NCBI GenBank assembly: GCA_002269645.1
Contig: NIVC01000151.1
Location: 248,001 to 312,000 of the forward strand
DNA: 64,000 nt
Source of the DNA: Macrostomum lignano
Taxonomy: Eukaryota
Reading direction: 5' to 3'
Below the pieces are notes generated by a model, which saw only the letters and a list, made by a program, of their open reading frames with translations, had not been told where the DNA came from and did not search any database. Of this stretch, positions 13,536 through 64,000 are shown piece by piece (positions within the stretch are counted from its first letter, which is position 1; each line of letters opens with the position of its first letter). The position numbers and the translations under genes are program-made.

Positions 13536-13899
13536 TCCTCCTCTCAGTTTTCGCCCCATGCAAATGACCCTCCTGCTGTCGGAATCGCACAGTCTGCAAC
13601 TGAATCCCGACCAGGGAGGCAAACAATGGCTCCGAGCGCCTGCGAGTTTGCATAGCGACTGCAACAGCTGCAGAAAAGCTGCCATGATAATTGAGAGACG
13701 GAAATGCGCAGCCCGGGCGCTGGCTGGACGCAGGATGTCTCAAGGCTGAGGACGCCTCTTTGAAGTCAGAGGCTAATGAGCGAAGGAGCGCGAGCCCACG
13801 GCCACCTGGACTCGTCAGGTTCCTATTTTTAGGAATTAATAAAGGCATTGAAAGCATTTGCGACCGCCAGCTGTTGGAAAATCCGACAGGGTCTTGCTA

Positions 13900-42441: not shown

Positions 42442-42769
42442 ATCTGCAGTTGCTTTTCTGGTTGGTGACGGAGACTGGGAAATTGCAGGCGTCGCTCAGA
42501 GACCGACTCGATTTTGGAGAAGCCGCGCTCCTGCGGTCGCCGCCTGTTTTAAAGCCTCTGGGAGATAAGCGGGCCGGACTGCGGCTGCGCCGTTCTCACG
42601 GGCGCGGCGCCGCCAGCTCCAGCGGGTCGCGGCGCGGGAGGCACACCTCTTCGCGTGACTTTTGCCGCAATTTGTCTTCTTGCAAAAAAGTTTTTACAAC
42701 AATTGCCGCTCAACTGAATTTGCTTGCCTGGAAAACTGCGGCCGGCTTTGTGTCTGACCTTTCATGTGC

Positions 42770-43460
42770 GCTGTGTCTCAGCTTTCAGTGTGTCTCTCGC
42801 CCTTCATTGTGTCTCGGCTTTCAGTTTGTGTCTCTCGCCCTTCATTGTGTCTCAGCTTTCAGTTTGTGTCTCTCGCCCTTCATTGTGTCTCAGCTTTCAG
42901 TTTGTGTCTCTCGCCCTTCATTGTGTCTCAGCTTTCAGTTTGTGTCTCTCGCCCTTCATTGTGTCTCAGCTTTCAGTTTGTGTCTCTCGCCCTTCATTGT
43001 GTCTCAGCTTTCAGTTTGTGTCTCTCGCCCTTCATTGTGTCTCAGCTTTCAGTTTGTGTCTCTGGCCCTTCATTGTGTCTCAGCTTTCAGTTTGTGTCTC
43101 TGGCCCTTCATTGTGTCTCTCACCCTCCATTGTGTCTCTCGCAATTCATTGTGTCTCTCACTCTTCATTGTGTCTCTCACTCTTCATTGTGTCTCTCGCA
43201 ATTCATTGTGTCTCTCACCCTTGATTGTGTCTCTCACTCTTCATTGTGTCTCTCGCCCTTTATTGTGTCTCTCGCCCTTCATTGTGTCTCTCGCAATTCA
43301 TTGTGTCTCTCGCAGTTCATTGTCTCTCGCAATTCATTGTCTCTCGCAATTCATTGTCTCTCGCCCTTCATTGTGCCTATCGCCCTTAATTGTATGTCTG
43401 TCAAAATTCATTGTGTCTCTCGCAGTTCATTGTGTCTCCCACCCTCCATTGTGTCTCTCA
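42770..43460. repeat. 38-bp/19-bp minisatellite (TTCATTGTGTCTCTCGCCC family), copy 1
   Basis: CAGCTTTCAGTTTGTGTCTCTCGCCCTTCATTGTGTCT grading into 19-bp units. Confidence 0.95.
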
Positions 43461-43467
43461 CCTGTAG

Positions 43468-44275
43468 CCGTAACCGTCAATCTCAAGAAGTGCACCTTCA
43501 AGGCGTCGGAAATCGAGTTCGTTGGACACCGCGTCAGCGCAGCGGGAATTCAACCTCTCCAGTCGCACACCGAGTCCGTATCGGAACTCAAGGCACCCAC
43601 CAATACGGCAGAGTTGGCTTCATTCCTCGGCTTTGCAAAGTTCTTCCAGTTCTACATCAAGAACCTGTCTCACGTCGCCGAGCCGCTGACAGCGCTCCTG
43701 CGCAAGGACGCGCCATGGAACTGGGACGCGAAATGCCGTTCTTCGACCAAGATCACGAAACCGTCATCTCCTGCGACAGCAGCGACGTCGCCCTGGGCGC
43801 GACCCCCAGCCAAGTCGACGAGCACGGACAGCTGCGGCCAGTCGCCTTCGCCTCGCGAGCCCTGTCCGACACCGAGCGCCGCTACTCTGCGTCAGAGAAG
43901 GAGGCCTTGGCCTGCGTCTGTAGCTGCGAGCATTGGCACCTGCTGCTGTACGGTCGCAAGTTCAAGCTTCTCACCGACCATCAAGCGCTGACGACCCTGC
44001 TGACACCTCGAGGAGTCGGCCAACGACCTCTTCGACTTCAGCGCTGGTGCGAGCGACTCTTCGTCTACGACTTCCGGCTTCCGACACCGACATCGACTTC
44101 CGACATCGAGTACGTCCCCGGCAAGCTCAACGTCCAACCCGACTTTCTGTCTCGCTACGGCTACGACGGCAAGAGCGCAGCCAACGAGTCCAACGAGCAG
44201 CGCCAGAGCGAGTCCGACATCAACCTGGTGCTGGCCAGAAGCACCGAGCCGATCTCAGAGAGACTAAGAGAGACT
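43468..44275 (+). mobile_element. Ty3/gypsy pol fragment (RT C-terminus + RNase H), frameshifted, copy 1
   Basis: TVNLKKCTF..EIEFVGH..P..ELASFLGFAKFF..YIKNLSHVAEPLTALLRKD..W.W; after a deletion/frameshift near 43735: CDSSDVALGA..RPVAFASRALSDTERRYSASEKEALA..LYGRKF.L.TDHQAL..RLQRW..YDF..IEYVPGKLNVQPDFLSR. Confidence 0.92.
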
Positions 44276-44750
44276 TCATTGTATGTCTGTCAAAATTCAT
44301 TGTGTCTGTCTCAATTCATTGTGTCTCTCACCCTTGATTGTGTCTCTCACCCTTCATTGTATGTCTGTCTCAATTCATTAGGTCTCTCGCCCTTCATTGT
44401 GTCTATCGCCCTTCATTGTATGTCTGTCTCAATTCATTGTGTCTATCGCCCTTCATTGTGTCTATCGCCCTTCATTGTATGTCTGTCTCAATTCATTGTG
44501 TCTATCGCCCTTCATTGTATGTCTGTCTCAATTCATTGTGTCTATCGCCCTTCATTGTATGTCTGTCTCAATTCATTGTGTCTATCGCCCTTCATTGTAT
44601 GTCTGTCTCAATTCATTGTGTCTATCGCCCTTCATTGTATGTCTGTCTCAATTCATTGTGTCTATCGCCCTTCATTGTATGTCTGTCTCAATTCATTGTG
44701 TCTATCGCCCTTCATTGTATGTCTGTGTCTGTCACAATTCACTGTGTCTC
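44270..44750. repeat. 40-bp minisatellite, same family as 42770-43460, copy 1
   Basis: Unit TTCATTGTGTCTATCGCCCTTCATTGTATGTCTGTCTCAA. Confidence 0.95.
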
Positions 44751-45559
44751 TCACCATTAATTTTCTCACCAACCGCTGCCCAGACTCCCTCAATCCAAGG
44801 TCTGTCTGCCACTCCGCCTGTTCCCACAGCCCGTTAACAACAGAGCCAATTTGCTTCAAGTGAGCAGGTGAGAAGGACATCCAATTAATTAGGCAGATCC
44901 GGCGGTGGAGAGCTCATCTTCATCGCGGTGTGTAAACAGCTCAAGCCGAGTGCTTCCCAGCGACACCTGAGACAATTGCTGCTTGTCTGCAGCTGGTCCG
45001 AGCCGCTTATTGATGCCTTGGATGATCGCATGGAGACACTTCGGGTCCAACCGGTTGTTGAGTTCGCTGCAACGGATGGAGCCCGGGGTCCTTCACGGGT
45101 ACTCACGTCCAGCTGGGGAGCACGCGGCGGGTGGGACGATGCAGCACTGGCCGCCCTCATCAGCTCCCAGTCTCTTAGGGCCCGGGTTTCGGTGGCGCAG
45201 CTCAGCGGTGAACAGTCTGGGTCTCGCGCCACGAGCCCCTGGGTTCGATTCCGCACTCATTTGGGCTTGTCGTGCAATTCACAGACATGAGGGCCAACCA
45301 TTGAGCCAACTAACCAATCTGCTTGCTAGCGAGCTTCTCTCGACCCATAGGAAAATTGTAAAGCTTTTAAAACCAACCTTCAATCAGAAATGAGCAAAAT
45401 GTTCAATTAATTGTTGAAAACAGAATACAAGTTAATTGAATCAAAATTAGGCCTTCATCATCAAATAAATTGGCATTAAAAGATTTACATGCGGGAATCC
45501 TCTGAGTACACTTGGTCCTTTGGTTCAATAGGCTGAAAGTGCCGTTCTGGCCTGTCCCC

Positions 45560-46125
45560 AGTCTTACTAGTGGACGGGTGGAACAGCCACGTCTATAAAT
45601 AGAAAATGCCCCAGTCCCACCAGTGACGGGTGGAACAGCCAAATCTATAAATAGAAATGTCCCCAGTCCCACTAGTGACGGGTGGAACAGCCACATCTAT
45701 AAATAGAAGTGTCCCCAGTCCCACCAGTGACGGGTGGAACAGCCACATCTATAAATAGAAATGTCCCCAGTCCCACTAGTGACGGGTGGAACAGCCACAT
45801 CTATAAATAGAAATGTCCCCAGTCCCACTAGTGACGGGTGGAACAGCCACATCTATAAATAGAAATGTCCCCAGTCCCACTAGTGACGGGTGGAACAGCC
45901 AAATCTATAAATAGAAATGTCCCCAGTCCCACTAGTGACGGGTGGAACAGCCACATCTATAAATAGAAATGTCCCCAGTCCCACTAGTGACGGGTGGAAC
46001 AGCCACATCTATAAATAGAAATGTCCCCAGTCCCACTAGTGACGGGTGGAACAGCCAAATCTATAAATAGAAATGTCCCCAGTCCCACTAGTGACGGGTG
46101 GAACAGCCACATCTATAAATAGAAA
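45560..46125. repeat. 52-bp minisatellite containing CTATAAATAG, copy 1
   Basis: Unit TGTCCCCAGTCCCACTAGTGACGGGTGGAACAGCCACATCTATAAATAGAAA, about 11 units. Confidence 0.95.
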
Positions 46126-46364
46126 GTGCCTGCAGAACAGCAAGATGCCGCTGCAGTTTCCGAGACTGGGGGTCGACCCGATATTGTCTGTGGTAATCTG
46201 CAGCAACTGAAGATACTGCAATCCTGGGTCACTGAAGCAATGTCCTCAATGGTTGCAGAGTTGCGCCCCAGGCCATCCAGCCTCTTTTTCTCGCCTTGAA
46301 CCCGCGGATCTTTGATATGGAACTCCAGTCGGTTGCGTCTTTCATTCATTTATTTGCAAGATTG

Positions 46365-46630
46365 AAGCTTCACAATCTCGAAGCTTCACAATCTCAAAGC
46401 TTCACAAGCTCGAAGCTTCACAAGCTCGAATCTTCACAAGCTCGAAGCTTCACAAGCTCGAAGCTTCACAAGCTCGAAGCTTCACAATCTCGAAGCTTCA
46501 CAAGCTCGAGGCTTCACAAGCTCGAAGCTTCACAAGCTCGAAGCTTCACAAGCTCGAAGCTTCACAAGCTCGAAGCTTCACAAGCTCGAAGCTTCACAAG
46601 CTCGAAGCTTCACAATCTCGAAGCTTCACA
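46365..46630. repeat. 16-bp minisatellite, copy 1
   Basis: Unit AAGCTTCACAAGCTCG. Confidence 0.95.
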
Positions 46631-46849
46631 GCCCAGAGCTCCTTTCTTTGAGTGCTATTTCGCGTTTAAATTGCATTAAACTTGTGTTCCCGAAAAAACT
46701 GCCAACCCCTCTACCATAGAGTCGATTAAAAACATTTTTGTTAATAATGTTGAAGTCACTGGACTAAAGTACTTTTGGGTGATTCGTCAGTGCTTACTTC
46801 ATTGTCAAGATATTTGATATCTAGACATCATAGAGAGAACAGAGCAATT

Positions 46850-47095
46850 ATCCGGTGGCCGTGCCAGCAACACCCAGTGGCCGTGACAGCAACATCCGGC
46901 GACCGTGACAGCAACATCCGGTGGCCGTGACAGCAACATCCGGTGATTGTGACAGCAACATCCGGTGGCCGTGACAGCAACATCCGGTGATTGTGACAGC
47001 AACATCCGGTGGCCGTGACAGCAACATCCGGTGATTGTGACAGCAACATCCGGTGGCCGTGACAGCAACATCCGGTCAACGTGACAATCCGGTGA
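46850..47095. repeat. 22-bp minisatellite with alternating variants, copy 1
   Basis: GTGGCCGTGACAGCAACATCCG alternating with GTGATTGTGACAGCAACATCCG. Confidence 0.95.
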
Positions 47096-47151
47096 CCTGA
47101 ATCAGTACATCCGGCTTCATGCATTCCACCGGGATCAAGCATCTGACTGAG

Positions 47152-49515
47152 CCGAGGCTGGGCTACCGGAGGCGCGCCCAGCAGGACATCCGCCTCGTGC
47201 GCCAGTACTCGCTGCTGCTGGCCATTCTTCTGACCAGCGTGCTCTACAGAGTGCTGGCCGTCCTGGTGGGTGAGTGACGGGACATTGCTGCGGTTCCGGA
47301 CTGATTCTCTTTAAATGCGCCAATCTAACAGGTAAATGCCCCAATCTTCCAGGTAAATTCCCCAATCTAACAGGAAAATTCGTCAGTCTAACAGGTAAAT
47401 GCCCCAGTCTTACAGGTAAATTCCCCAGTCTAACAGGTAAATTCCCCAGTCTAACAGGTAAATTCCCCAGTCTAACAGATAAATTCCCCAGTCTAACAGG
47501 TAAATTCCCCAGTCTAACAGATAAATTCCCCAGTCTAACAGGTAAATTCTCCAGTCTAACAGGTAAATTTCCGAGTCTAACAGGTAAATCCCCCAGTCTA
47601 ACAGGTAAATTCCCCAGTCTAACAGGTGAATACAATTTGCATTAACCTGGCTAAAGTGCATGGCACACTCAAAAGCAGCTTAGATTTGGTGCTTGTTTAA
47701 TGTAAGAATACTTTCTTCTTGCCGCTACCCGCCTGGTCCCCCTCGGCCGGGGTGCGGATGCCGGAGCGCTCATCACTAACCAAACACTCCGATGCTTTGC
47801 TCAGCAATTTGCTCAAGCAGCTGCTGCACTTCAGGGCCCGTGGCAGGTTATGCGTAGCTTGAGTCTGACATTGGAGTTCTGTCACGTGACGGGCTGCCAG
47901 CGGAATCGATCCCAAAACGTGTTTCTTTGTCACTGAAGCATTTCCTGGCTTTCTTGTCATTGCTGTTGAGGGACGCCTGGGATGGGTGCGTGAAACGCCT
48001 GTGTAAGAATTAGCTGGCATAGCAACTCAACTGCTGTCACTCTGCTAACAAGTCGTTTTTATAGCAGATGGAATAACTTAGTGAAAATATCAGGATATGA
48101 CTTTGAGTGCTTCCGCCACTGTGCGCTTGTACATCTGCGCGCATTCACACCCAATGACCATCATTCACACCCAATGACCATCATTCACACCCAATGACCA
48201 TCATTCACACCCAATGACCATCATTCACACCCAATGACCATCATTCACACCCAATGACCATCATTCACACCCAATGACCGTCATTCACACCCATGACCAT
48301 CGTTCACACCCAATGACCGTCATTCACATCCAATGACCATCATTCACACCCAATGACCATCATTCACACCCAATGACCATCATTCACACCCAATGACCGT
48401 CATTCACACCCAATGACCATCATTCACACCCAATGACCATCATTCACACCCAATGACCATCATTCACACCCAATGGCTATCATTCACACCCAATGACCAT
48501 CATTCACATCCAATGACCATCATTCATACCCAATGACCGTCATTCACATCCAATGACCATCATTCACACCCAATGACCGTCATTCACACCCAATGACCAT
48601 AGTTCACACCCAATGACCATCATTCACACCCAATGACCATCATTCACACCCAATGACCATCATTCACACCCAATGGCTATCATTCACACCCAATGACCAT
48701 CATTCACACCCAATGGCTATCATTCACACCCAATGACCATAATTCACACCCGATGGCCCTCATTCACACCCAATGGCCCTCATTCACACCTGATGGCCCT
48801 CATTCACACCCAATGGCCTTCATTCACACCCGATGGCCTTCATTCACACCCGATGGCCTTCATTCACACCCGATGGTCTTCAATCACACCCGATGGCCCT
48901 CATTCACACCCGATGGTCTTCATTCACACCCAATGGCCTTCATTCACACCCGATGGCCTTCATTCACACCCGATGGCCTTCATTCACACCCGATGGCCTT
49001 CATTCACACCCGATGGCCCTCATTCACACCCGATGGCCCTCATTCACACCCGATGGCCTTCATTCACACCCACCCCGCCCCGCTACGCAGTGCAGTTCAT
49101 GTACCTGGCGCTCCATTGCGAGTCCAGCGCCAGCAGCGGTTACGTCATCACGCTGTGCGCGGAGAACGCCTGCTTCGTCTGCGCCTGCCTCTGGTCGGCC
49201 GGCGGCGCCACCGACAACTGGCTGGCCGGCGCTGTCAACCGCGCCGTGTCGCCGCTGCTGCAGGCCGGCAGCTTCGGCTGCCTCTGCGCCAACGTGGCGC
49301 ACTTCCTGGTCACCGCGGCCGGCCGCCAGCCGCCCTGCTGGCCCCCCTACTTCACCGGCCTGCTGTGGGGCCTCACCTGGCTGAATGTCGCCTCCTTCGC
49401 CACCGTGGCCGGCCTGCTGACGCAGCTCAGCTCGCCGCTGAATCTCTTCGACGCCATCCGCCAGACAGACGGAGACGAGGGGGCGCCGGAGGAGAACCTG
49501 CTGGGGCGGGAGTGA
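47152..49515 (+). CDS. 3' part of an uncharacterised multi-pass membrane protein, copy 1
   Basis: Exon about 47152-47269 (YSLLLAILLTSVLYRVLAVLV, G|GTGAGT) joins in phase 1 to 49091-49515 (several hydrophobic Cys-rich segments, GC-rich codons, TGA). 5' exons were not resolved. Confidence 0.55.
47322..47630. repeat. 21-bp minisatellite containing CTAACAG|GTAAAT, copy 1
   Basis: Unit CCCCAGTCTAACAGGTAAATT, about 14-15 units. Confidence 0.95.
48143..49072. repeat. 20-bp minisatellite, copy 1
   Basis: CATTCACACCCAATGACCAT grading to CATTCACACCCGATGGCCTT, ending just before the acceptor at 49090. Confidence 0.95.
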
Positions 49516-49774
49516 CTGCCTTGGCTTGGGTCTGACTCCTGTCTTACTTGTGCAGCTGTTGCTTCATATTACTGAATATTACTAGAGTCTTACTCGGATC
49601 TTACTCAAAATTTTACTTGCGCGTCGCACGATCAAAGCCCTTGACTCGCATTAAGCTTAATAAGTATTTTACTTGAGTATGATATGTGCCAATTGTTCAT
49701 CTAATAATGATATCGAACTAATACTTTTATATTTATATGCAGTGACAGAGGGGCTCATAGCCAACCTGATGCGA

Positions 49775-51247
49775 GAGTGAGTGACAGTGAATGGGAGTGA
49801 GTGACAGTTAATGGGAGTGAGTGACAGTGAATGGGAGTGAGTGACAGTGAACGGGAGTGAGTGACAGTGAATGGGAGTGAGTGACAGTGAATGTGAGTGA
49901 GTGACAGTTAATGGGAGTGAGTGACAGTGAACAGGAGTGAGTGACAGTGAACGGGAGTGAGTGACAGTGAATGGGAGTGAGTGACAGTGAATGGGAGTGA
50001 GTGACAGCGAATGGGAGTGAGTGACAGCGAATGGGAGTGAGTGACAGCGAATGGGAGTGAGTGACAGTGAATGGGAGTGAGTGACAGTGAATGTGAGTGA
50101 GTGACAGTGAATGTGAGTGAGTGACAGTGAATGGGAGTGATTGACAGTGAATGTGAGTGAGTGACAGTGAATGTGAGTGAGTGACAGTGAATGTGAGTGA
50201 GTGACAGTGAATGTGAGTGAGTGACAGTGAATGGGAGTTAGTTACAGTGAATGTGAGTGAGTGACAGTAAATGTGAGTGAGTGACAGTGAATGTGAGTGA
50301 GTGACAGTGAATGTGAGTGAGTGACAGTAAATGTGAGTGAGTGACAGTGAATGTGAGTGAGTGACAGTGAATGTGAGTGAGTGACAGTAAATGTGAGTGA
50401 GTGACAGTGAATGTGAGTGAGTGACAGTAAATGTGAGTGAGTGACAGTGAATGTGAGTGAGTGACAGTGAATGTGAGTGAGTGACAGTGAATGTGAGTGA
50501 GTGACAGTGAATGTGAGTGAGTGACAGTGAATGTGAGTGAGTGACAGTAAATGTGAGTGAGTGACAGTGAATGTGAGTGAGTGACAGTGAATGTGAGTGA
50601 GTGACAGTGAATGTGAGTGAGTGACAGTAAATGTGAGTGAGTGACAGTGAATGTGAGTGAGTGACAGTGAATGTGAGTGAGTGACAGTGAATGTGAGTGA
50701 GTGACAGTGAATGTGAGTGAGTGACAGTGAATGGGAGTTAGTTACAGTGAATGTGAGTGAGTGACAGTGAATGTGAGTGAGTGACAGTGAATGTGAGTGA
50801 GTGACAGTGAATGTGAGTGAGTGACAGTAAATGTGAGTGAGTGACAGTGAATGTGAGTGAGTGACAGTGAATGTGAGTGAGTGACAGTAAATGTGAGTGA
50901 GTGACAGTGAATGTGAGTGAGTGACAGTGAATGTGAGTGAGTGACAGTGAATGTGAGTGAGTGACAGTGAATGTGAGTGAGTGACAGTGAATGTGAGTGA
51001 GTGACAGTGAATGTGAGTGAGTGACAGTGAATGTGAGTGAGTGACAGTAAATGTGAGTGAGTGACAGTGAATGTGAGTGAGTGACAGTGAATGTGAGTGA
51101 GTGACAGTGAATGTGAGTGAGTGACAGTAAATGTGAGTGAGTGACAGTGAATGTGAGTGAGTGACAGTGAATGTGAGTGAGTGACAGTGAATGTGAGTGA
51201 GTGACAGTAAATGTGAGTGAGTGACAGTGAATGGGAGTAAGTGACAG
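49775..51247. repeat. 20-bp minisatellite (about 1.5 kb), copy 1
   Basis: Unit GTGAGTGACAGTGAATGTGA (GGGA variant at the left end). Confidence 0.97.
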
Positions 51248-51379
51248 AGTGACCTGGCAAATCAGCTGGCAATGTGTGTCACCTGGCAGATCAGCTGACA
51301 ATGTGGGTCAGTGCCAAACTGATTGACAAACTGGCTGGGGGGGGGGGCATCTGCGATGTTGATGCGATGAGGCGCGCGG

Positions 51380-51455
51380 GAGGCCAATGGGATCTGAGAC
51401 GGGCCAATGGGATCTGAGACTGGCTGGGGCCATCCGAAGTCCCAAAATAAAAGCT
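51380..51455 (+). promoter_or_regulatory. Candidate promoter of the neuropeptide gene
   Basis: Two GGCCAATGG (CCAAT) boxes in a 20-bp duplication at 51384 and 51404, and an A/T-rich AAATAAAAG about 140 bp before the ATG. Motif-only evidence. Confidence 0.25.
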
Positions 51456-51585
51456 GGTGCAGAGGCTCCCACCATGGAGCTCTCACTGACTCCGCCGGGC
51501 CGCTCAGCGAACTCAAAAAGCCAAGTTCTCAGCTCGCATTATTTACTGTACTGCATTTCCATACAAGCAGAAGCAGCCCGGTTCG

Positions 51586-52546
51586 ATGGCTCGGTCTCTC
51601 TGTGAGTTTCCATGAGTTATCCTGCAGTGAAGAAGCGCAGATAAAGTTAATAAAGTTTAGGATTTGGCATTTCGGCATTTCAGTTTGGCAGCTGCTGTTC
51701 TTGGCCGCCGCCTTCGCCCTCGCCTCCGCGGGTCGCCTCCACGAGGAGTTTCCTGGTGAGCCTTCTGTTTAAACAAATCATAAGAGACAAATACATGTAC
51801 GAACAAATTAACATTGGAACATTGGGACATCATCCCACACCAGCGCTGCGGCTCTTCTGCCCATCCCGCTGGCTCCTGAGCGCATGCAAGCGCGCCAATA
51901 CTGTATGCAGACACGCCCTGAGGCAAACTCTCACACTGGGTGAACTGCTCACCTAAACTGCTCACCTAAACTGCTCACCTAAACTGCTCACCTAAACTGC
52001 TCACCTAAACTGCTCACCTAAACTGCTCACCTAAACTGCTCACTTAAACTGATAACCTAAACTGCTCACCTAAACTGATAACCTAAACTGCTCACCTAAA
52101 CTGATAACCTAAACTGCTCACCTAAACTGCTCACCTAAACTGATAACCTAAACTGCTCACCTAAACTGATAACCTAAACTGCTCACCTAAACTGATAACC
52201 TAAACTGATAGCCACTCACCTAAACTGATAACCTCAGCTGCTCACCTAAACTGCTCATTAAAGCTGCTCTTCCTAAACTAACTTGTCAGATACCGACGCT
52301 CTGGACGGCCCTGGTGCCGAGGAAGACGATCTAGCGAGGCTGCTGCCGCTGCGCCAGCTGGCTCGCGACTACAAGAGCAAGAGAATGTCGGAATTTGTCG
52401 GCAAACGGATGTCGGAATTTGTCGGCAAACGGATGTCGGAATTTGTCGGCAAACGGATGTCGGAATTTGTTGGCAAACGCCCAATGAGTCGAAAGCGAAT
52501 GTCGGAATTTGTCGGCAAGAGAATGTCGGAATTCGTCGGAAAATAG
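51586..52546 (+). CDS. TRH/EFLamide-type neuropeptide precursor (6 x MSEFV-amide), copy 1
   Basis: Exons 51586-51601, 51684-51755 and 52290-52546, both introns GT-AG phase 1. MARSLFWQLLFLAAAFALASA signal peptide, acidic spacer, then KR-MSEFVG-KR x5 and a final MSEFVGK-stop. Confidence 0.9.
51945..52280. repeat. 13-bp minisatellite in neuropeptide intron 2, copy 1
   Basis: CCTAAACTGCTCA / CCTAAACTGATAA. Confidence 0.95.
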
Positions 52547-52768
52547 TAAGCCGCTGAGCGGAGCCACCCAGGAGAAGAGTGAAGCAGCTGAAAGCACATT
52601 TGCTGGACATTTCCCTTGTCGCGATGGCGAACGCAGATCTGAAAATTCAATAAAGCAGCCCCGATGCGCCCTCTTGGATGTCGCAGTTAAAAAGTTATGT
52701 TTACAATTTTGAATTCCGTTGATTTAAAAAAATCGATGTCTCTCAATAAGAGTTCGAGTTGGGACCGG

Positions 52769-53742
52769 TGTTAGAGTTTAGGATCTCCGCGTTTTAGGGT
52801 CTCCGCGGTTTTTCTATATGAAAATTATAGCTACTTCTATGTACATCGAGATTGGCACCCCAAAGTGTGAGCAGTCTTGCGTAACTTTCAATAGGCTTTG
52901 CACATTTTGGAGATCAGCTTTGTACTCATATTTTATGGGTGGCGGGAAGCGCTGTAAACATTTACATTGGGCAGATGATAAGAAAGGTTTGTGCTGTGTG
53001 ATTTTCGTCGATTTCTGCATTTCAAAGCTTGATGGCTTCGCTCAATCAAATATTTTTCTACGTCCTAAACAATGAATATACGCAGGTACCAGCCAGATTG
53101 GACGCCAAAGATAAGGCCAACTTAAAAAGACGCATTAGAGAAAAGAGCAAGCGTTTCTCCATCCATGACGGAGCGCTTTACTACAGGGTGACTAATAAGG
53201 ACGACAGTCAGCGAATGCGGCCTGAAGACCATCGCAGAGTACTTTTCACAGAGGAAGAGGTACGGGATAAGATCCGCAGCCTTCACTCGCAAGGAAGTCA
53301 CGTGGGTGTCAACAGCACAGTGAGCCTTTTTACTGCACGATACGACTGCGGAGGGGACAGAGTTAGGCTTCGCAATCTTCGCAGGGACGATCGGAAGGGT
53401 GGTAAGATGCGATACACTTGGAGTCAGCAAGTCTACATCGTGACCAGGTGTCTTGGTCAAAACGTGTACAGGCTAGGAGGACTAACCATGTGTGTCAATG
53501 GGAAACACCTCAAGAGATGCTTCCTCCAAGCACCGGCTGAAAGTGCATCACCGGTTTTTCACTAAGCGGACATTTACTTCATTACTTTAACAGTAAACAG
53601 TTTTCCATTTAAATACACAGTTGTGCGAGCATATACATATAAAACTAATGCTACGTTGATGATAAAAATGCCTTTCCACTTCTTATACATGTACGCGTTC
53701 AATACCATGACCATTGGTTTTACACAAATGGGGGGAGATCGG
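52769..53742 (+). mobile_element. Ginger/GIN-like (gypsy-integrase-related) element, internally deleted
   Basis: ORF 53029-53565: ..KRFSIHDGALYY..RRVL..IRSLHSQGSHVGVNST....ARY joined directly to GDRVRLRN.RR..RKGGKM...W...Y.V.......VYRL; no DDE core. Candidate TGT-starting left end at 52769 with CTCCGCG subterminal repeats. Confidence 0.55.
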
Positions 53743-54541
53743 AATTTGTCTTCTTGCAAAAAAGTTTTTACAACAATTGCCGCTCAACTGAATTTGCTTG
53801 CCTGGAAAACTGCGGCCGGCTTTGTGTCTGACCTTTCATGTGCGCTGTGTCTCAGCTTTCAGTGTGTCTCTCGCCCTTCATTGTGTCTCGGCTTTCAGTT
53901 TGTGTCTCTCGCCCTTCATTGTGTCTCAGCTTTCAGTTTGTGTCTCTCGCCCTTCATTGTGTCTCAGCTTTCAGTTTGTGTCTCTCGCCCTTCATTGTGT
54001 CTCAGCTTTCAGTTTGTGTCTCTCGCCCTTCATTGTGTCTCAGCTTTCAGTTTGTGTCTCTCGCCCTTCATTGTGTCTCAGCTTTCAGTTTGTGTCTCTC
54101 GCCCTTCATTGTGTCTCAGCTTTCAGTTTGTGTCTCTGGCCCTTCATTGTGTCTCAGCTTTCAGTTTGTGTCTCTGGCCCTTCATTGTGTCTCTCACCCT
54201 CCATTGTGTCTCTCGCAATTCATTGTGTCTCTCACTCTTCATTGTGTCTCTCACTCTTCATTGTGTCTCTCGCAATTCATTGTGTCTCTCACCCTTGATT
54301 GTGTCTCTCACTCTTCATTGTGTCTCTCGCCCTTTATTGTGTCTCTCGCCCTTCATTGTGTCTCTCGCAATTCATTGTGTCTCTCGCAGTTCATTGTCTC
54401 TCGCAATTCATTGTCTCTCGCAATTCATTGTCTCTCGCCCTTCATTGTGCCTATCGCCCTTAATTGTATGTCTGTCAAAATTCATTGTGTCTCTCGCAGT
54501 TCATTGTGTCTCCCACCCTCCATTGTGTCTCTCACCTGTAG

Positions 54542-55349
54542 CCGTAACCGTCAATCTCAAGAAGTGCACCTTCAAGGCGTCGGAAATCGAGTTCGTTGGA
54601 CACCGCGTCAGCGCAGCGGGAATTCAACCTCTCCAGTCGCACACCGAGTCCGTATCGGAACTCAAGGCACCCACCAATACGGCAGAGTTGGCTTCATTCC
54701 TCGGCTTTGCAAAGTTCTTCCAGTTCTACATCAAGAACCTGTCTCACGTCGCCGAGCCGCTGACAGCGCTCCTGCGCAAGGACGCGCCATGGAACTGGGA
54801 CGCGAAATGCCGTTCTTCGACCAAGATCACGAAACCGTCATCTCCTGCGACAGCAGCGACGTCGCCCTGGGCGCGACCCCCAGCCAAGTCGACGAGCACG
54901 GACAGCTGCGGCCAGTCGCCTTCGCCTCGCGAGCCCTGTCCGACACCGAGCGCCGCTACTCTGCGTCAGAGAAGGAGGCCTTGGCCTGCGTCTGTAGCTG
55001 CGAGCATTGGCACCTGCTGCTGTACGGTCGCAAGTTCAAGCTTCTCACCGACCATCAAGCGCTGACGACCCTGCTGACACCTCGAGGAGTCGGCCAACGA
55101 CCTCTTCGACTTCAGCGCTGGTGCGAGCGACTCTTCGTCTACGACTTCCGGCTTCCGACACCGACATCGACTTCCGACATCGAGTACGTCCCCGGCAAGC
55201 TCAACGTCCAACCCGACTTTCTGTCTCGCTACGGCTACGACGGCAAGAGCGCAGCCAACGAGTCCAACGAGCAGCGCCAGAGCGAGTCCGACATCAACCT
55301 GGTGCTGGCCAGAAGCACCGAGCCGATCTCAGAGAGACTAAGAGAGACT
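54542..55349 (+). mobile_element. Ty3/gypsy pol fragment (RT C-terminus + RNase H), copy 2
   Basis: Same translation and same frameshift as 43468-44275. Confidence 0.92.
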
Positions 55350-58225
55350 TCATTGTATGTCTGTCAAAATTCATTGTGTCTGTCTCAATTCATTGTGTCT
55401 CTCACCCTTGATTGTGTCTCTCACCCTTCATTGTATGTCTGTCTCAATTCATTAGGTCTCTCGCCCTTCATTGTGTCTATCGCCCTTCATTGTATGTCTG
55501 TCTCAATTCATTGTGTCTATCGCCCTTCATTGTGTCTATCGCCCTTCATTGTATGTCTGTCTCAATTCATTGTGTCTATCGCCCTTCATTGTATGTCTGT
55601 CTCAATTCATTGTGTCTATCGCCCTTCATTGTATGTCTGTCTCAATTCATTGTGTCTATCGCCCTTCATTGTATGTCTGTCTCAATTCATTGTGTCTATC
55701 GCCCTTCATTGTATGTCTGTCTCAATTCATTGTGTCTATCGCCCTTCATTGTATGTCTGTCTCAATTCATTGTGTCTATCGCCCTTCATTGTATGTCTGT
55801 GTCTGTCACAATTCACTGTGTCTCTCACCATTAATTTTCTCACCAACCGCTGCCCAGACTCCCTCAATCCAAGGTCTGTCTGCCACTCCGCCTGTTCCCA
55901 CAGCCCGTTAACAACAGAGCCAATTTGCTTCAAGTGAGCAGGTGAGAAGGACATCCAATTAATTAGGCAGATCCGGCGGTGGAGAGCTCATCTTCATCGC
56001 GGTGTGTAAACAGCTCAAGCCGAGTGCTTCCCAGCGACACCTGAGACAATTGCTGCTTGTCTGCAGCTGGTCCGAGCCGCTTATTGATGCCTTGGATGAT
56101 CGCATGGAGACACTTCGGGTCCAACCGGTTGTTGAGTTCGCTGCAACGGATGGAGCCCGGGGTCCTTCACGGGTACTCACGTCCAGCTGGGGAGCACGCG
56201 GCGGGTGGGACGATGCAGCACTGGCCGCCCTCATCAGCTCCCAGTCTCTTAGGGCCCGGGTTTCGGTGGCGCAGCTCAGCGGTGAACAGTCTGGGTCTCG
56301 CGCCACGAGCCCCTGGGTTCGATTCCGCACTCATTTGGGCTTGTCGTGCAATTCACAGACATGAGGGCCAACCATTGAGCCAACTAACCAATCTGCTTGC
56401 TAGCGAGCTTCTCTCGACCCATAGGAAAATTGTAAAGCTTTTAAAACCAACCTTCAATCAGAAATGAGCAAAATGTTCAATTAATTGTTGAAAACAGAAT
56501 ACAAGTTAATTGAATCAAAATTAGGCCTTCATCATCAAATAAATTGGCATTAAAAGATTTACATGCGGGAATCCTCTGAGTACACTTGGTCCTTTGGTTC
56601 AATAGGCTGAAAGTGCCGTTCTGGCCTGTCCCCAGTCTTACTAGTGGACGGGTGGAACAGCCACGTCTATAAATAGAAAATGCCCCAGTCCCACCAGTGA
56701 CGGGTGGAACAGCCAAATCTATAAATAGAAATGTCCCCAGTCCCACTAGTGACGGGTGGAACAGCCACATCTATAAATAGAAGTGTCCCCAGTCCCACCA
56801 GTGACGGGTGGAACAGCCACATCTATAAATAGAAATGTCCCCAGTCCCACTAGTGACGGGTGGAACAGCCACATCTATAAATAGAAATGTCCCCAGTCCC
56901 ACTAGTGACGGGTGGAACAGCCACATCTATAAATAGAAATGTCCCCAGTCCCACTAGTGACGGGTGGAACAGCCAAATCTATAAATAGAAATGTCCCCAG
57001 TCCCACTAGTGACGGGTGGAACAGCCACATCTATAAATAGAAATGTCCCCAGTCCCACTAGTGACGGGTGGAACAGCCACATCTATAAATAGAAATGTCC
57101 CCAGTCCCACTAGTGACGGGTGGAACAGCCAAATCTATAAATAGAAATGTCCCCAGTCCCACTAGTGACGGGTGGAACAGCCACATCTATAAATAGAAAG
57201 TGCCTGCAGAACAGCAAGATGCCGCTGCAGTTTCCGAGACTGGGGGTCGACCCGATATTGTCTGTGGTAATCTGCAGCAACTGAAGATACTGCAATCCTG
57301 GGTCACTGAAGCAATGTCCTCAATGGTTGCAGAGTTGCGCCCCAGGCCATCCAGCCTCTTTTTCTCGCCTTGAACCCGCGGATCTTTGATATGGAACTCC
57401 AGTCGGTTGCGTCTTTCATTCATTTATTTGCAAGATTGAAGCTTCACAATCTCGAAGCTTCACAATCTCAAAGCTTCACAAGCTCGAAGCTTCACAAGCT
57501 CGAATCTTCACAAGCTCGAAGCTTCACAAGCTCGAAGCTTCACAAGCTCGAAGCTTCACAATCTCGAAGCTTCACAAGCTCGAGGCTTCACAAGCTCGAA
57601 GCTTCACAAGCTCGAAGCTTCACAAGCTCGAAGCTTCACAAGCTCGAAGCTTCACAAGCTCGAAGCTTCACAAGCTCGAAGCTTCACAATCTCGAAGCTT
57701 CACAGCCCAGAGCTCCTTTCTTTGAGTGCTATTTCGCGTTTAAATTGCATTAAACTTGTGTTCCCGAAAAAACTGCCAACCCCTCTACCATAGAGTCGAT
57801 TAAAAACATTTTTGTTAATAATGTTGAAGTCACTGGACTAAAGTACTTTTGGGTGATTCGTCAGTGCTTACTTCATTGTCAAGATATTTGATATCTAGAC
57901 ATCATAGAGAGAACAGAGCAATTATCCGGTGGCCGTGCCAGCAACACCCAGTGGCCGTGACAGCAACATCCGGCGACCGTGACAGCAACATCCGGTGGCC
58001 GTGACAGCAACATCCGGTGATTGTGACAGCAACATCCGGTGGCCGTGACAGCAACATCCGGTGATTGTGACAGCAACATCCGGTGGCCGTGACAGCAACA
58101 TCCGGTGATTGTGACAGCAACATCCGGTGGCCGTGACAGCAACATCCGGTCAACGTGACAATCCGGTGACCTGAATCAGTACATCCGGCTTCATGCATTC
58201 CACCGGGATCAAGCATCTGACTGAG

Positions 58226-60589
58226 CCGAGGCTGGGCTACCGGAGGCGCGCCCAGCAGGACATCCGCCTCGTGCGCCAGTACTCGCTGCTGCTGGCCATT
58301 CTTCTGACCAGCGTGCTCTACAGAGTGCTGGCCGTCCTGGTGGGTGAGTGACGGGACATTGCTGCGGTTCCGGACTGATTCTCTTTAAATGCGCCAATCT
58401 AACAGGTAAATGCCCCAATCTTCCAGGTAAATTCCCCAATCTAACAGGAAAATTCGTCAGTCTAACAGGTAAATGCCCCAGTCTTACAGGTAAATTCCCC
58501 AGTCTAACAGGTAAATTCCCCAGTCTAACAGGTAAATTCCCCAGTCTAACAGATAAATTCCCCAGTCTAACAGGTAAATTCCCCAGTCTAACAGATAAAT
58601 TCCCCAGTCTAACAGGTAAATTCTCCAGTCTAACAGGTAAATTTCCGAGTCTAACAGGTAAATCCCCCAGTCTAACAGGTAAATTCCCCAGTCTAACAGG
58701 TGAATACAATTTGCATTAACCTGGCTAAAGTGCATGGCACACTCAAAAGCAGCTTAGATTTGGTGCTTGTTTAATGTAAGAATACTTTCTTCTTGCCGCT
58801 ACCCGCCTGGTCCCCCTCGGCCGGGGTGCGGATGCCGGAGCGCTCATCACTAACCAAACACTCCGATGCTTTGCTCAGCAATTTGCTCAAGCAGCTGCTG
58901 CACTTCAGGGCCCGTGGCAGGTTATGCGTAGCTTGAGTCTGACATTGGAGTTCTGTCACGTGACGGGCTGCCAGCGGAATCGATCCCAAAACGTGTTTCT
59001 TTGTCACTGAAGCATTTCCTGGCTTTCTTGTCATTGCTGTTGAGGGACGCCTGGGATGGGTGCGTGAAACGCCTGTGTAAGAATTAGCTGGCATAGCAAC
59101 TCAACTGCTGTCACTCTGCTAACAAGTCGTTTTTATAGCAGATGGAATAACTTAGTGAAAATATCAGGATATGACTTTGAGTGCTTCCGCCACTGTGCGC
59201 TTGTACATCTGCGCGCATTCACACCCAATGACCATCATTCACACCCAATGACCATCATTCACACCCAATGACCATCATTCACACCCAATGACCATCATTC
59301 ACACCCAATGACCATCATTCACACCCAATGACCATCATTCACACCCAATGACCGTCATTCACACCCATGACCATCGTTCACACCCAATGACCGTCATTCA
59401 CATCCAATGACCATCATTCACACCCAATGACCATCATTCACACCCAATGACCATCATTCACACCCAATGACCGTCATTCACACCCAATGACCATCATTCA
59501 CACCCAATGACCATCATTCACACCCAATGACCATCATTCACACCCAATGGCTATCATTCACACCCAATGACCATCATTCACATCCAATGACCATCATTCA
59601 TACCCAATGACCGTCATTCACATCCAATGACCATCATTCACACCCAATGACCGTCATTCACACCCAATGACCATAGTTCACACCCAATGACCATCATTCA
59701 CACCCAATGACCATCATTCACACCCAATGACCATCATTCACACCCAATGGCTATCATTCACACCCAATGACCATCATTCACACCCAATGGCTATCATTCA
59801 CACCCAATGACCATAATTCACACCCGATGGCCCTCATTCACACCCAATGGCCCTCATTCACACCTGATGGCCCTCATTCACACCCAATGGCCTTCATTCA
59901 CACCCGATGGCCTTCATTCACACCCGATGGCCTTCATTCACACCCGATGGTCTTCAATCACACCCGATGGCCCTCATTCACACCCGATGGTCTTCATTCA
60001 CACCCAATGGCCTTCATTCACACCCGATGGCCTTCATTCACACCCGATGGCCTTCATTCACACCCGATGGCCTTCATTCACACCCGATGGCCCTCATTCA
60101 CACCCGATGGCCCTCATTCACACCCGATGGCCTTCATTCACACCCACCCCGCCCCGCTACGCAGTGCAGTTCATGTACCTGGCGCTCCATTGCGAGTCCA
60201 GCGCCAGCAGCGGTTACGTCATCACGCTGTGCGCGGAGAACGCCTGCTTCGTCTGCGCCTGCCTCTGGTCGGCCGGCGGCGCCACCGACAACTGGCTGGC
60301 CGGCGCTGTCAACCGCGCCGTGTCGCCGCTGCTGCAGGCCGGCAGCTTCGGCTGCCTCTGCGCCAACGTGGCGCACTTCCTGGTCACCGCGGCCGGCCGC
60401 CAGCCGCCCTGCTGGCCCCCCTACTTCACCGGCCTGCTGTGGGGCCTCACCTGGCTGAATGTCGCCTCCTTCGCCACCGTGGCCGGCCTGCTGACGCAGC
60501 TCAGCTCGCCGCTGAATCTCTTCGACGCCATCCGCCAGACAGACGGAGACGAGGGGGCGCCGGAGGAGAACCTGCTGGGGCGGGAGTGA
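58226..60589 (+). CDS. 3' part of the uncharacterised multi-pass membrane protein, copy 2
   Basis: Exons about 58226-58343 and 60165-60589, duplicates of copy 1. Confidence 0.55.
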
Positions 60590-62659
60590 CTGCCTTGGCT
60601 TGGGTCTGACTCCTGTCTTACTTGTGCAGCTGTTGCTTCATATTACTGAATATTACTAGAGTCTTACTCGGATCTTACTCAAAATTTTACTTGCGCGTCG
60701 CACGATCAAAGCCCTTGACTCGCATTAAGCTTAATAAGTATTTTACTTGAGTATGATATGTGCCAATTGTTCATCTAATAATGATATCGAACTAATACTT
60801 TTATATTTATATGCAGTGACAGAGGGGCTCATAGCCAACCTGATGCGAGAGTGAGTGACAGTGAATGGGAGTGAGTGACAGTTAATGGGAGTGAGTGACA
60901 GTGAATGGGAGTGAGTGACAGTGAACGGGAGTGAGTGACAGTGAATGGGAGTGAGTGACAGTGAATGTGAGTGAGTGACAGTTAATGGGAGTGAGTGACA
61001 GTGAACAGGAGTGAGTGACAGTGAACGGGAGTGAGTGACAGTGAATGGGAGTGAGTGACAGTGAATGGGAGTGAGTGACAGCGAATGGGAGTGAGTGACA
61101 GCGAATGGGAGTGAGTGACAGCGAATGGGAGTGAGTGACAGTGAATGGGAGTGAGTGACAGTGAATGTGAGTGAGTGACAGTGAATGTGAGTGAGTGACA
61201 GTGAATGGGAGTGATTGACAGTGAATGTGAGTGAGTGACAGTGAATGTGAGTGAGTGACAGTGAATGTGAGTGAGTGACAGTGAATGTGAGTGAGTGACA
61301 GTGAATGGGAGTTAGTTACAGTGAATGTGAGTGAGTGACAGTAAATGTGAGTGAGTGACAGTGAATGTGAGTGAGTGACAGTGAATGTGAGTGAGTGACA
61401 GTAAATGTGAGTGAGTGACAGTGAATGTGAGTGAGTGACAGTGAATGTGAGTGAGTGACAGTAAATGTGAGTGAGTGACAGTGAATGTGAGTGAGTGACA
61501 GTAAATGTGAGTGAGTGACAGTGAATGTGAGTGAGTGACAGTGAATGTGAGTGAGTGACAGTGAATGTGAGTGAGTGACAGTGAATGTGAGTGAGTGACA
61601 GTGAATGTGAGTGAGTGACAGTAAATGTGAGTGAGTGACAGTGAATGTGAGTGAGTGACAGTGAATGTGAGTGAGTGACAGTGAATGTGAGTGAGTGACA
61701 GTAAATGTGAGTGAGTGACAGTGAATGTGAGTGAGTGACAGTGAATGTGAGTGAGTGACAGTGAATGTGAGTGAGTGACAGTGAATGTGAGTGAGTGACA
61801 GTGAATGGGAGTTAGTTACAGTGAATGTGAGTGAGTGACAGTGAATGTGAGTGAGTGACAGTGAATGTGAGTGAGTGACAGTGAATGTGAGTGAGTGACA
61901 GTAAATGTGAGTGAGTGACAGTGAATGTGAGTGAGTGACAGTGAATGTGAGTGAGTGACAGTAAATGTGAGTGAGTGACAGTGAATGTGAGTGAGTGACA
62001 GTGAATGTGAGTGAGTGACAGTGAATGTGAGTGAGTGACAGTGAATGTGAGTGAGTGACAGTGAATGTGAGTGAGTGACAGTGAATGTGAGTGAGTGACA
62101 GTGAATGTGAGTGAGTGACAGTAAATGTGAGTGAGTGACAGTGAATGTGAGTGAGTGACAGTGAATGTGAGTGAGTGACAGTGAATGTGAGTGAGTGACA
62201 GTAAATGTGAGTGAGTGACAGTGAATGTGAGTGAGTGACAGTGAATGTGAGTGAGTGACAGTGAATGTGAGTGAGTGACAGTAAATGTGAGTGAGTGACA
62301 GTGAATGGGAGTAAGTGACAGAGTGACCTGGCAAATCAGCTGGCAATGTGTGTCACCTGGCAGATCAGCTGACAATGTGGGTCAGTGCCAAACTGATTGA
62401 CAAACTGGCTGGGGGGGGGGGCATCTGCGATGTTGATGCGATGAGGCGCGCGGGAGGCCAATGGGATCTGAGACGGGCCAATGGGATCTGAGACTGGCTG
62501 GGGCCATCCGAAGTCCCAAAATAAAAGCTGGTGCAGAGGCTCCCACCATGGAGCTCTCACTGACTCCGCCGGGCCGCTCAGCGAACTCAAAAAGCCAAGT
62601 TCTCAGCTCGCATTATTTACTGTACTGCATTTCCATACAAGCAGAAGCAGCCCGGTTCG

Positions 62660-63620
62660 ATGGCTCGGTCTCTCTGTGAGTTTCCATGAGTTATCCTGCA
62701 GTGAAGAAGCGCAGATAAAGTTAATAAAGTTTAGGATTTGGCATTTCGGCATTTCAGTTTGGCAGCTGCTGTTCTTGGCCGCCGCCTTCGCCCTCGCCTC
62801 CGCGGGTCGCCTCCACGAGGAGTTTCCTGGTGAGCCTTCTGTTTAAACAAATCATAAGAGACAAATACATGTACGAACAAATTAACATTGGAACATTGGG
62901 ACATCATCCCACACCAGCGCTGCGGCTCTTCTGCCCATCCCGCTGGCTCCTGAGCGCATGCAAGCGCGCCAATACTGTATGCAGACACGCCCTGAGGCAA
63001 ACTCTCACACTGGGTGAACTGCTCACCTAAACTGCTCACCTAAACTGCTCACCTAAACTGCTCACCTAAACTGCTCACCTAAACTGCTCACCTAAACTGC
63101 TCACCTAAACTGCTCACTTAAACTGATAACCTAAACTGCTCACCTAAACTGATAACCTAAACTGCTCACCTAAACTGATAACCTAAACTGCTCACCTAAA
63201 CTGCTCACCTAAACTGATAACCTAAACTGCTCACCTAAACTGATAACCTAAACTGCTCACCTAAACTGATAACCTAAACTGATAGCCACTCACCTAAACT
63301 GATAACCTCAGCTGCTCACCTAAACTGCTCATTAAAGCTGCTCTTCCTAAACTAACTTGTCAGATACCGACGCTCTGGACGGCCCTGGTGCCGAGGAAGA
63401 CGATCTAGCGAGGCTGCTGCCGCTGCGCCAGCTGGCTCGCGACTACAAGAGCAAGAGAATGTCGGAATTTGTCGGCAAACGGATGTCGGAATTTGTCGGC
63501 AAACGGATGTCGGAATTTGTCGGCAAACGGATGTCGGAATTTGTTGGCAAACGCCCAATGAGTCGAAAGCGAATGTCGGAATTTGTCGGCAAGAGAATGT
63601 CGGAATTCGTCGGAAAATAG
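62660..63620 (+). CDS. TRH/EFLamide-type neuropeptide precursor, copy 2
   Basis: Exons 62660-62675, 62758-62829 and 63364-63620; same translation as copy 1. Confidence 0.9.
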
Positions 63621-64000
63621 TAAGCCGCTGAGCGGAGCCACCCAGGAGAAGAGTGAAGCAGCTGAAAGCACATTTGCTGGACATTTCCCTTGTCGCGATG
63701 GCGAACGCAGATCTGAAAATTCAATAAAGCAGCCCCGATGCGCCCTCTTGGATGTCGCAGTTAAAAAGTTATGTTTACAATTTTGAATTCCGTTGATTTA
63801 AAAAAATCGATGTCTCTCAATAAGAGTTCGAGTTGGGACCGGTGTTAGAGTTTAGGATCTCCGCGTTTTAGGGTCTCCGCGGTTTTTCTATATGAAAATT
63901 ATAGCTACTTCTATGTACATCGAGATTGGCACCCCAAAGTGTGAGCAGTCTTGCGTAACTTTCAATAGGCTTTGCACATTTTGGAGATCAGCTTTGTACT

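Follow-up and report, generated by a model that had tools for sequence, protein, structure and literature searches.

A 64-kb stretch of the genome of the flatworm Macrostomum lignano (eukaryotic, 49.7% G+C; contig NIVC01000151.1, positions 248,001 to 312,000 of the forward strand; hereafter the window) was found to contain, at 51586-52546, a gene whose predicted product has the architecture of a multi-copy neuropeptide precursor. The best explanation of the evidence as a whole was a three-exon preprohormone gene of the fulicin/EFLamide family, encoding a thyrotropin-releasing hormone (TRH)-type ligand, and we give this reading a probability of about 65%. That the product is a neuropeptide precursor, of whatever family, is almost certain. 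The 114-amino acid product was MARSLFWQLLFLAAAFALASAGRLHEEFPDTDALDGPGAEEDDLARLLPLRQLARDYKSKR-(MSEFVGKR)x4-PMSRKR-MSEFVGKR-MSEFVGK-stop.

The peptide array (52385-52543, forward strand) comprised six MSEFVG units, starting at positions 52385, 52409, 52433, 52457, 52499 and 52523. Each unit was preceded by the dibasic site Lys-Arg (KR) and each except the last (K-stop) was followed by another; a degenerate spacer, PMSRKR (52481-52498), lay between the fourth and fifth units. Tandem Repeats Finder (TRF) read the array as a 24-bp repeat, with 98% identity over the first four units. The first-pass annotation of this DNA had proposed that this apparent minisatellite is coding, and that third codon positions vary in it around six invariant, KR-flanked peptides with Gly as amide donor. 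The codon table of the array bore this out: the six units differed at seven nucleotides and all seven differences were synonymous (GTC/GTT, TTT/TTC, GGC/GGA, AAA/AAG and CGG/CGC/AGA). When an equal number of changes per unit was placed at random in a Monte Carlo simulation, the peptides stayed intact in 4 of 200,000 trials (P ~2e-5); the peptide units are under purifying selection. A six-frame scan of the whole window revealed no second tandem cluster of [hydrophobic]-G-[KR][KR], and the array is for this reason unlike a chance product of the window’s minisatellites.

Three exons joined in phase upstream of and across the array, all on the forward strand. The coding part of exon 1 (51586-51601) opened with the ATG at 51586, and its 16 nt, ATGGCTCGGTCTCTCT, encoded M-A-R-S-L and supplied the opening base of the following codon, ahead of a GTGAGT donor. 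A predicted intron of 82 nt (51602-51683; GT...AG, acceptor tttcAG) separated it from exon 2 (51684-51755; 72 nt), which encoded a hydrophobic core and a cleavage region, ...FWQLLFLAAAFALASA|GRLHEEFP, ended in phase 1 and was followed by a GTGAGC donor. The second predicted intron (51756-52289; 534 nt, GTGAGC...ttgtcAG) enclosed a 13-bp minisatellite of about 26 copies (51943-52279). The coding part of exon 3 (52290-52546) held an acidic spacer, the peptide array and a TAG stop codon (52544-52546). With this predicted splicing and its GT-AG introns, the spliced coding sequence amounted to 16+72+257 = 345 nt with matching phases, giving 114 amino acids; the 16-nt and 72-nt exons suggested by the first-pass annotation were exact to the base.

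The N-terminus of the spliced model, predicted exon 1 included, was examined heuristically by hydropathy and the -3/-1 rule and was signal-peptide-like: MARS (one Arg), a 15-residue hydrophobic core (Kyte-Doolittle maximum of 2.71 over 11 residues), and A-S-A at positions -3 to -1 before Gly22. The junction between exons 2 and 3 (HEEFP|DTDALDG) was common to the two M. lignano models found in UniProt, A0A1I8IB55 and A0A1I8FF87, which derive from a separate set of predictions, and the amino-acid stretch of exon 2 was also present in both (search matches P0001 and P0079, respectively). Exon 1 as proposed was absent from both, and this predicted exon is the least secure part of the gene model.

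Upstream of the ATG, inspection of the sequence pointed to a putative TATA-like element, AAAATAAAAG (51444-51453, forward strand), about 130 nt 5' of the start codon. A 20-bp direct repeat detected by TRF (GGCCAATGGGATCTGAGAC[G/T], 2.2 copies, 51382-51424, forward strand) held two CCAAT-box-like motifs approximately 160-200 nt 5' of the ATG, and is a possible promoter element. On the 3' side, an AATAAA hexamer resembling a polyadenylation signal (52649-52654, forward strand) lay about 100 nt past the stop codon and may serve as one. An ATG in strong context (caccATGG) was also present at 51474; it opens an ORF (open reading frame) in another frame (51474-51605, stop 51603-51605) that overlaps the start codon at 51586. 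Use of the TATA-like motif at 51444-51453 could leave this ATG outside the transcript, on its 5' side; alternatively, it may open a translational upstream ORF. The unspliced ORF at 51407-51772 was considered as a first exon and rejected: the hydrophobic stretch would lie about 95 residues inside the protein, and translation would have to start upstream of the TATA-like motif. At the other end of the gene the stop codon overlapped a donor-like sequence, AAATA|GTAAGC (52541-52552), where A0A1I8IB55 apparently splices and continues as ...MSEFVGKYTG; this splice is probably a prediction artefact, though it could be an alternative 3' exon.

Spliced leaders ending in AUG exist in flatworms, and the 5' end of the gene might be built differently, the mature peptides being as predicted: a spliced leader with a terminal AUG would be joined at 51692 (after tttggcAG), or a different upstream exon would be used. 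A leader AUG joined at 51692 gives M-LLFLAAAFALASA|G, an in-frame signal peptide, and leaves the mature peptides unchanged. Two successive AGs occur here (51682-3 and 51690-1), the second in frame for an AUG-donating leader; the chimeric A0A1I8IB55 joins another upstream exon to the exon 2 region; the strong-context ATG at 51474 opens an overlapping upstream ORF; and trans-splicing affects over 10% of the transcripts of M. lignano (PMC5173321). Even so, the 16-nt exon has its own ATG, fits in phase and is followed by a consensus GTGAGT donor, producing a textbook n-region (MARS) followed by an h-region, and the TATA-like and CCAAT-like motifs stand at a suitable distance 5' of it. We regard such an alternative 5' end as rather improbable and retain the three-exon model.

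The gene had already been annotated in part under other names. The top match to the exon-3 product was A0A1I8IB55 (“Conserved plasma membrane protein”, M. lignano, E 1.8e-49), and A0A1I8FF87 (“Anoctamin”, M. lignano) was also matched. Both models were chimeric, taking in neighbouring sequence; A0A1I8FF87 (42210-49482 of the window) read the repeat in a shifted frame and joined pieces of an 11-kb duplicated unit with the peptide exon. Pfam detected no anoctamin domain in A0A1I8FF87, and the name “Anoctamin” looks unfounded. No Pfam family matched A0A1I8IB55, A0A1I8FF87 or the 114-amino acid precursor; Pfam holds no family for fulicin/EFLamide precursors. The description of the gene as hidden, made from the DNA letters, is fair as far as these UniProt records are concerned, because the gene occurs there only inside two misnamed chimeric models.

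Relatives were sought exhaustively with phmmer, the exon-3 product serving as query and 1.84 billion cluster representatives as the database. There were 192 matches at E<=1e-3, 58 of them at E<=1e-10, with scores driven by the repeats, and nearly all were multi-copy precursors of -F[LVI]-amide pentapeptides. Four classes were distinguished by their peptide units: “class A”, x-[S/Y/N]-[E/D]-F-[L/V/I] (51 proteins); “class B”, x-R-[E/D/Q]-F-V (22 proteins), including gastropod PRQFVamide precursors; “class C”, x-[P/R]-x-F-[V/I] (24 proteins); and “class D”, the FLamides (10 proteins). Class A included a founding member, the precursor of fulicin itself from Achatina fulica (P35905, E 6.3e-11), a Biomphalaria fulicin-like precursor (E 6.3e-15) and a protein of Penaeus monodon in which GSEFLGKR occurs 13 times (E 4.7e-14), the pattern of arthropod EFLamide. 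Annelid-type FSEFLGGKR proteins (P0139 and P0111; GGK(K)R) were also among the matches and fell outside class A, the extra Gly being missed by the regular expression that defined the units. Precursors with FSEFVGKR and MSEFL/IGKR units were recovered as well; the nearest single peptides, FSEFV, WSEFV, GSEFV and MSEFL/MSEFI, were identical to MSEFV at four of five positions, and the nearest FSEFV and MSEFL/I precursors were encoded on contigs from the run or sample accessions ERR6349664, JGI 3300005037 and 3300018840.

A 24-bp minisatellite open by chance in one frame, or a decayed pseudogene, is a highly implausible account of the locus. In its favour, minisatellites fill the window, the DNA of units one to four hardly differs, and A0A1I8FF87 shows a frameshifted form in another assembly. 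All three forward frames, together with reverse frames, are also open across the array, although open alternative frames are expected because the repeat is short. Set against this are the exclusively synonymous changes between units, the stop codon placed directly after the last unit, the in-phase upstream exons encoding a signal peptide, and the 192 homologues of the same architecture; the window has no other array of this kind. The reverse-strand and other-frame ORFs across the repeat were rejected as coding candidates, being devoid of processing sites, homologues and a signal peptide.

The assignment within this group of peptides was made from the sequence of the units. The family signature is x-[S/N/Y]-[E/D]-F-[L/V/I]-NH2, and E-F-V stood at the amidated C-terminus of all six flatworm units, as the core signature E-[L/F]-[L/F/V] (PMC8398477) demands. 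Mean BLOSUM values per unit failed to part the classes, and position -4 and per-residue identity were used instead. In the fulicin/EFLamide family position -4 is non-basic, mostly Ser, Tyr or Asn; in the 51 class A precursors it was Ser in 58% and Tyr in 27%, and none of them contained an xR[EDQ]F unit; the 22 class B precursors had Arg at -4 in essentially every unit, with a stray unit of the class A type in only two. The flatworm gene carried Ser at -4 in 6/6 units and Arg in 0/6, which places it with fulicin/EFLamide and not with PRQFVamide. Per-residue identity was 65-77% to xSEF[LV] precursors vs. 47-60% to PRQFVamide precursors. In units of MIP (Mytilus inhibitory peptide)/PxFVamide, F-V/I-NH2 is preceded by a non-acidic residue at -3 and by Pro or Arg at -4, whereas the flatworm units have Ser-Glu, with only the C-terminal FV-NH2 in common. 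A fulicin/EFLamide-type rather than a PRQFV/MIP-type precursor is accordingly the probable identity suggested by the units, with the separation from PRQFVamide resting mainly on position -4. The TRH/EFLamide type named by the first-pass annotation was thus the family best supported, given the matches to fulicin (P35905), to the Penaeus GSEFLGKR units and to FSEFLGGKR proteins; within it the nearest peptide was fulicin, and the flatworm units have a single Gly.

Several points weigh against the preferred reading. The best bit scores belonged to gastropod PRQFVamide precursors (P0002, E 4e-28, and P0003, E 3e-27), since class B precursors carry more units. Mean BLOSUM per unit hardly distinguished the fulicin class (11.7) from the PRQFV class (11.5), C-terminal Val was more frequent in the PRQFV class (80%) and less so in the fulicin/EFLamide class (21%), and the likeness of such short repetitive precursors can be convergent. 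The 16-nt exon 1 and both splice junctions are predictions, the signal peptide was called heuristically from hydropathy together with the -3/-1 rule, and no report was found of fulicin itself acting on a TRH-type receptor.

Some of these points would fit a genuine amidated-peptide precursor of the PRQFVamide or MIP/FVamide lineage, acting on a receptor other than the TRH type. The top PRQFVamide matches (P0002 and P0003) hold xREFV and xRDFV units, with E/D-F-V-NH2 in common with the flatworm peptide; MREFV units exist; Val at -1 is typical of the PRQFV class; and the FVamide/MIP and EFLGamide/fulicin lineages are entangled, occupying one gene in annelids and oysters (PMC3890597, PMC8398477). 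The Arg found at -4 in essentially every PRQFVamide unit, and the Pro or Arg followed by a non-acidic residue in MIPs, nevertheless contrast with Ser-Glu in all six flatworm units; per-residue identity was higher to xSEF[LV] precursors; and bona fide fulicin precursors themselves hold -EFV units (FNEFV, QYEFV). An origin in the PRQFVamide or MIP lineage consequently seems unlikely to us. The first-pass annotation had set FVamide/MIP against the TRH type as a family that would speak against it. This opposition did not stand: FVamide/MIP is no clean alternative because annelid and oyster peptides of both kinds share one gene. In Platynereis and Capitella the FVamide mRNA also carries the EFLGamide region, placed after a stop codon (PMC3890597), and in the oyster alternative splicing of one gene gives either MIP or fulicin precursors (PMC8398477). 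No companion FVamide/MIP exon was detected within the window by the six-frame scan.

Fulicin is Phe-D-Asn-Glu-Phe-Val-NH2, and fulyal bears D-Ala at the same position. Judged by the predicted sequence, fulicin (FnEFV-NH2) is the closest characterised peptide to the flatworm product, and not annelid EFLGamide. The Achatina peptide (precursor P35905) and the flatworm peptide are both pentapeptides that share the C-terminal sequence -Glu-Phe-Val-NH2 exactly, and at position 2 each has a small polar residue (FNEFV and MSEFV); both come from multi-copy precursors with KR sites and Gly as amide donor, ending in ...F[VI]GK-stop. The precursors differ in that those of gastropods are 230-360 amino acids long, with spacers and many varied units (PYDFV, YAEFL), whereas that of the flatworm is 114 amino acids long with six identical units. 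Fulicin is a peptide of gastropods and the flatworm gene belongs to another phylum, Platyhelminthes; fulicin has a D-residue at position 2.

Arthropod EFLamides (crustacean and chelicerate xGSEFLamide; Pyrrhocoris TVGTEFLamide) share with the flatworm peptide the Ser-Glu-Phe core and the single Gly donor (PMC7294237), and their precursors, with 1-18 paracopies, similarly contain abutting units of the form GKR-x-SEFLGKR (PMC7294237; P0036, P0073). They gave the highest per-residue identity in the search (65-77%), but have Leu rather than Val at the C-terminus and a longer N-terminus (MGSEFL, VPGSEFL); EFLamide activates a TRH-type receptor in the locust, an action that is putative for the flatworm peptide. 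Annelid EFLGamide (Platynereis FSEFLGamide) has a comparable Ser-Glu-Phe-[Leu/Val] core, and FSEFVGGKR/FSEFLGGKR precursors were matched. It differs in having two Gly residues and a product ending in -Gly-NH2; all flatworm units read EFVGKR, with one Gly in place of the two of ...EFLGGKR, and would end in -Val-NH2.

PRQFVamides of the Aplysia type (Plakobranchus GFO15630.1, Deroceras ARS01374.1) resemble the flatworm product as -[E/D/Q]-Phe-Val-NH2 pentapeptides in long KR-flanked arrays, but their precursors have Arg at -4 instead of Ser, 47-60% identity and a length of 400-550 amino acids. TRH of vertebrates and other deuterostomes (pGlu-His-Pro-NH2, PF05438) is likewise a short, Gly-amidated peptide from a multi-copy, KR-flanked precursor, and homologous receptors have been proposed in the literature; the peptides themselves show no similarity, the flatworm peptide having neither N-terminal Gln/pGlu nor Pro-NH2. 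The TRH precursor family PF05438 did not match the 114-amino acid precursor, in which no Gln-x-Pro-Gly units were present. Deroceras PRQFVamide 1 (P0003) gave a sub-threshold match to PF05438 (E 0.005, 17 bits vs. a cut-off of 27.8); it most likely reflects mere repeated KR...GKR spacing, and was the only profile-level hint joining -FVamide to TRH precursors.

Fulicin-related peptides and EFLGamide have been united in one family with the core E-[L/F]-[L/F/V], regarded as the protostome orthologues of TRH (PMC8398477, PMC11890989). As the literature treats this family as the protostome counterpart of TRH, MSEFV-NH2 is likely to be a ligand of a TRH-type G protein-coupled receptor (GPCR), a proposal of a strength similar to that of the family assignment. 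Platynereis FSEFLGamide serves as ligand for a TRH-type receptor, the link having first been shown for the annelid family (PMC5818035), and ligands from Platynereis, C. elegans (ELFamides) and Locusta activate TRH-type receptors (PMC5818035, PMC7294237); for the locust, activation by EFLamide is reported in work cited in PMC7294237. Among flatworms, pro-neuropeptides under the names TRH and TRH2 are expressed in a polyclad larva (PMC10396302, PMC13551398), and monogenean GPCRs cluster with TRH/EFLG receptors (PMC9645230). A literature string search returned no neuropeptide text naming MSEFV, SEFVG or EFVamide.

The processing of the precursor can be outlined by analogy with the established prohormone pathway. 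Exons 1 and 2 would supply a cleavable signal peptide, with a predicted cut at ASA|G after residue 21, and exon 3 would supply the acidic spacer and the six MSEFVG paracopies bounded by Lys-Arg. Prohormone convertases would cut at the KR sites, a carboxypeptidase would trim the basic residues, and peptidylglycine alpha-amidating monooxygenase would turn the C-terminal Gly into the amide. Each precursor would thus yield six molecules of MSEFV-NH2 (calculated [M+H]+ ~611.29); the by-products would be an acidic N-terminal spacer peptide of 38 residues and the short fragment PMS(R). The most likely function, given the putative family membership, would be that of a neuronal or neuroendocrine ligand of an M. 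lignano TRH-type GPCR.

The gene lay within an exact duplication. Positions 42669-52926 were identical to positions 53743-64000: at an offset of 11,074 bp, 10,258 bp aligned with 0 mismatches, and the junctions were sharp. The first unit of this 11,074-bp head-to-tail duplication (42669-53742) contained the gene, approximately 6 kb of minisatellites and Ty3/gypsy-like fragments; the second (53743-64000) ended at the edge of the window. The second gene copy (62660-63620, forward strand; exons 62660-62675, 62758-62829 and 63364-63620) was 100% identical to the first, and tblastn of A0A1I8IB55 and A0A1I8FF87 matched both copies. Total identity across about 6 kb of hypervariable arrays points either to duplication in the very recent past or to an assembly error that doubled the unit. 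The two gene copies claimed by the first-pass annotation were therefore found, as identical halves of an exact 11,074-bp duplication that is possibly an assembly effect. The locus holds at least two identical gene copies in the assembly, either very recent or in part an assembly effect.

A single genomic copy at this locus, with the second one an artefact of false duplication, is a minority prospect that we take seriously. It would account for the 0 mismatches over 10,258 bp including the hypervariable minisatellites, and PMC10468722 describes M. lignano assemblies as difficult on account of repeats and hidden polyploidy. The chimeric A0A1I8IB55, which comes from a separate prediction set, argues otherwise: it runs from a frameshifted exon 3 through a spacer ORF (53086-53328) into exons 2-3 of the next copy, and its array has 5 MSEFVG units rather than 6, so that the head-to-tail arrangement was seen independently.

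Two further elements were associated with the duplicated unit. A 178-amino acid ORF (MASLNQIFFYVLNNEYTQVPARLD...; 53029-53565) just 3' of the peptide gene had no Pfam match, is fused between two copies of the gene in A0A1I8IB55 and is probably transposon-derived. A Ty3/gypsy-type reverse transcriptase/RNase H fragment (43700-44300, copy at 54780-55370; Pfam RT_RNaseH, E 8e-29) lay between 38-40-bp minisatellites and looks like a decayed retroelement within the duplicated unit.

The gene is a probable flatworm member of the known fulicin/EFLamide family and reveals no new kind of signalling system. It corrects the annotation of a peptide-hormone gene misnamed “Conserved plasma membrane protein” and “Anoctamin” in UniProt. 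M. lignano can be made transgenic. A fulicin/EFLamide (protostome TRH-type) member is now available in a genetically tractable flatworm, in a phylum for which data on this family are thin, and the defined pentapeptide MSEFV-NH2 allows a direct test of TRH-type signalling, and perhaps of D-isomerisation at position 2, in Platyhelminthes. A frankly speculative extension, which we hold to be improbable, is that isomerisation might convert MSEFV-NH2 to M-(D-Ser)-EFV-NH2, in parallel with the D-Asn of fulicin and the D-Ala of fulyal, and that the exact 11-kb tandem array might be a recent dosage amplification of the ligand. If this were true, L-to-D isomerisation at position 2 of TRH-type peptides would be older than the mollusc-flatworm split, and M. 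lignano would be a genetic model for seeking the still unknown isomerase and for testing how chirality gates the activation of TRH-type receptors.

Elsewhere in the window, minisatellite density was extreme: TRF returned 160 rows in 64 kb, corresponding to approximately 60 or more arrays with 11-68-bp units, for example at 9143-13539 (23-bp x193), 49775-51247 (20-bp x74) and 48142-49072 (20-bp x47), and many of the arrays gave rise to long spurious ORFs. NUDIX-domain exons (36612-37376; Pfam PF00293, E 3e-5) were split by an intron-like stretch with a 20-bp minisatellite (36887-37047). An ORF at 2765-3910 encoded a PTB/PID phosphotyrosine-interaction domain (PF00640, E 1.4e-6) with a poly-Gln tract behind it, and its apparent N-terminus was a translated 17-bp minisatellite (2793-3133).

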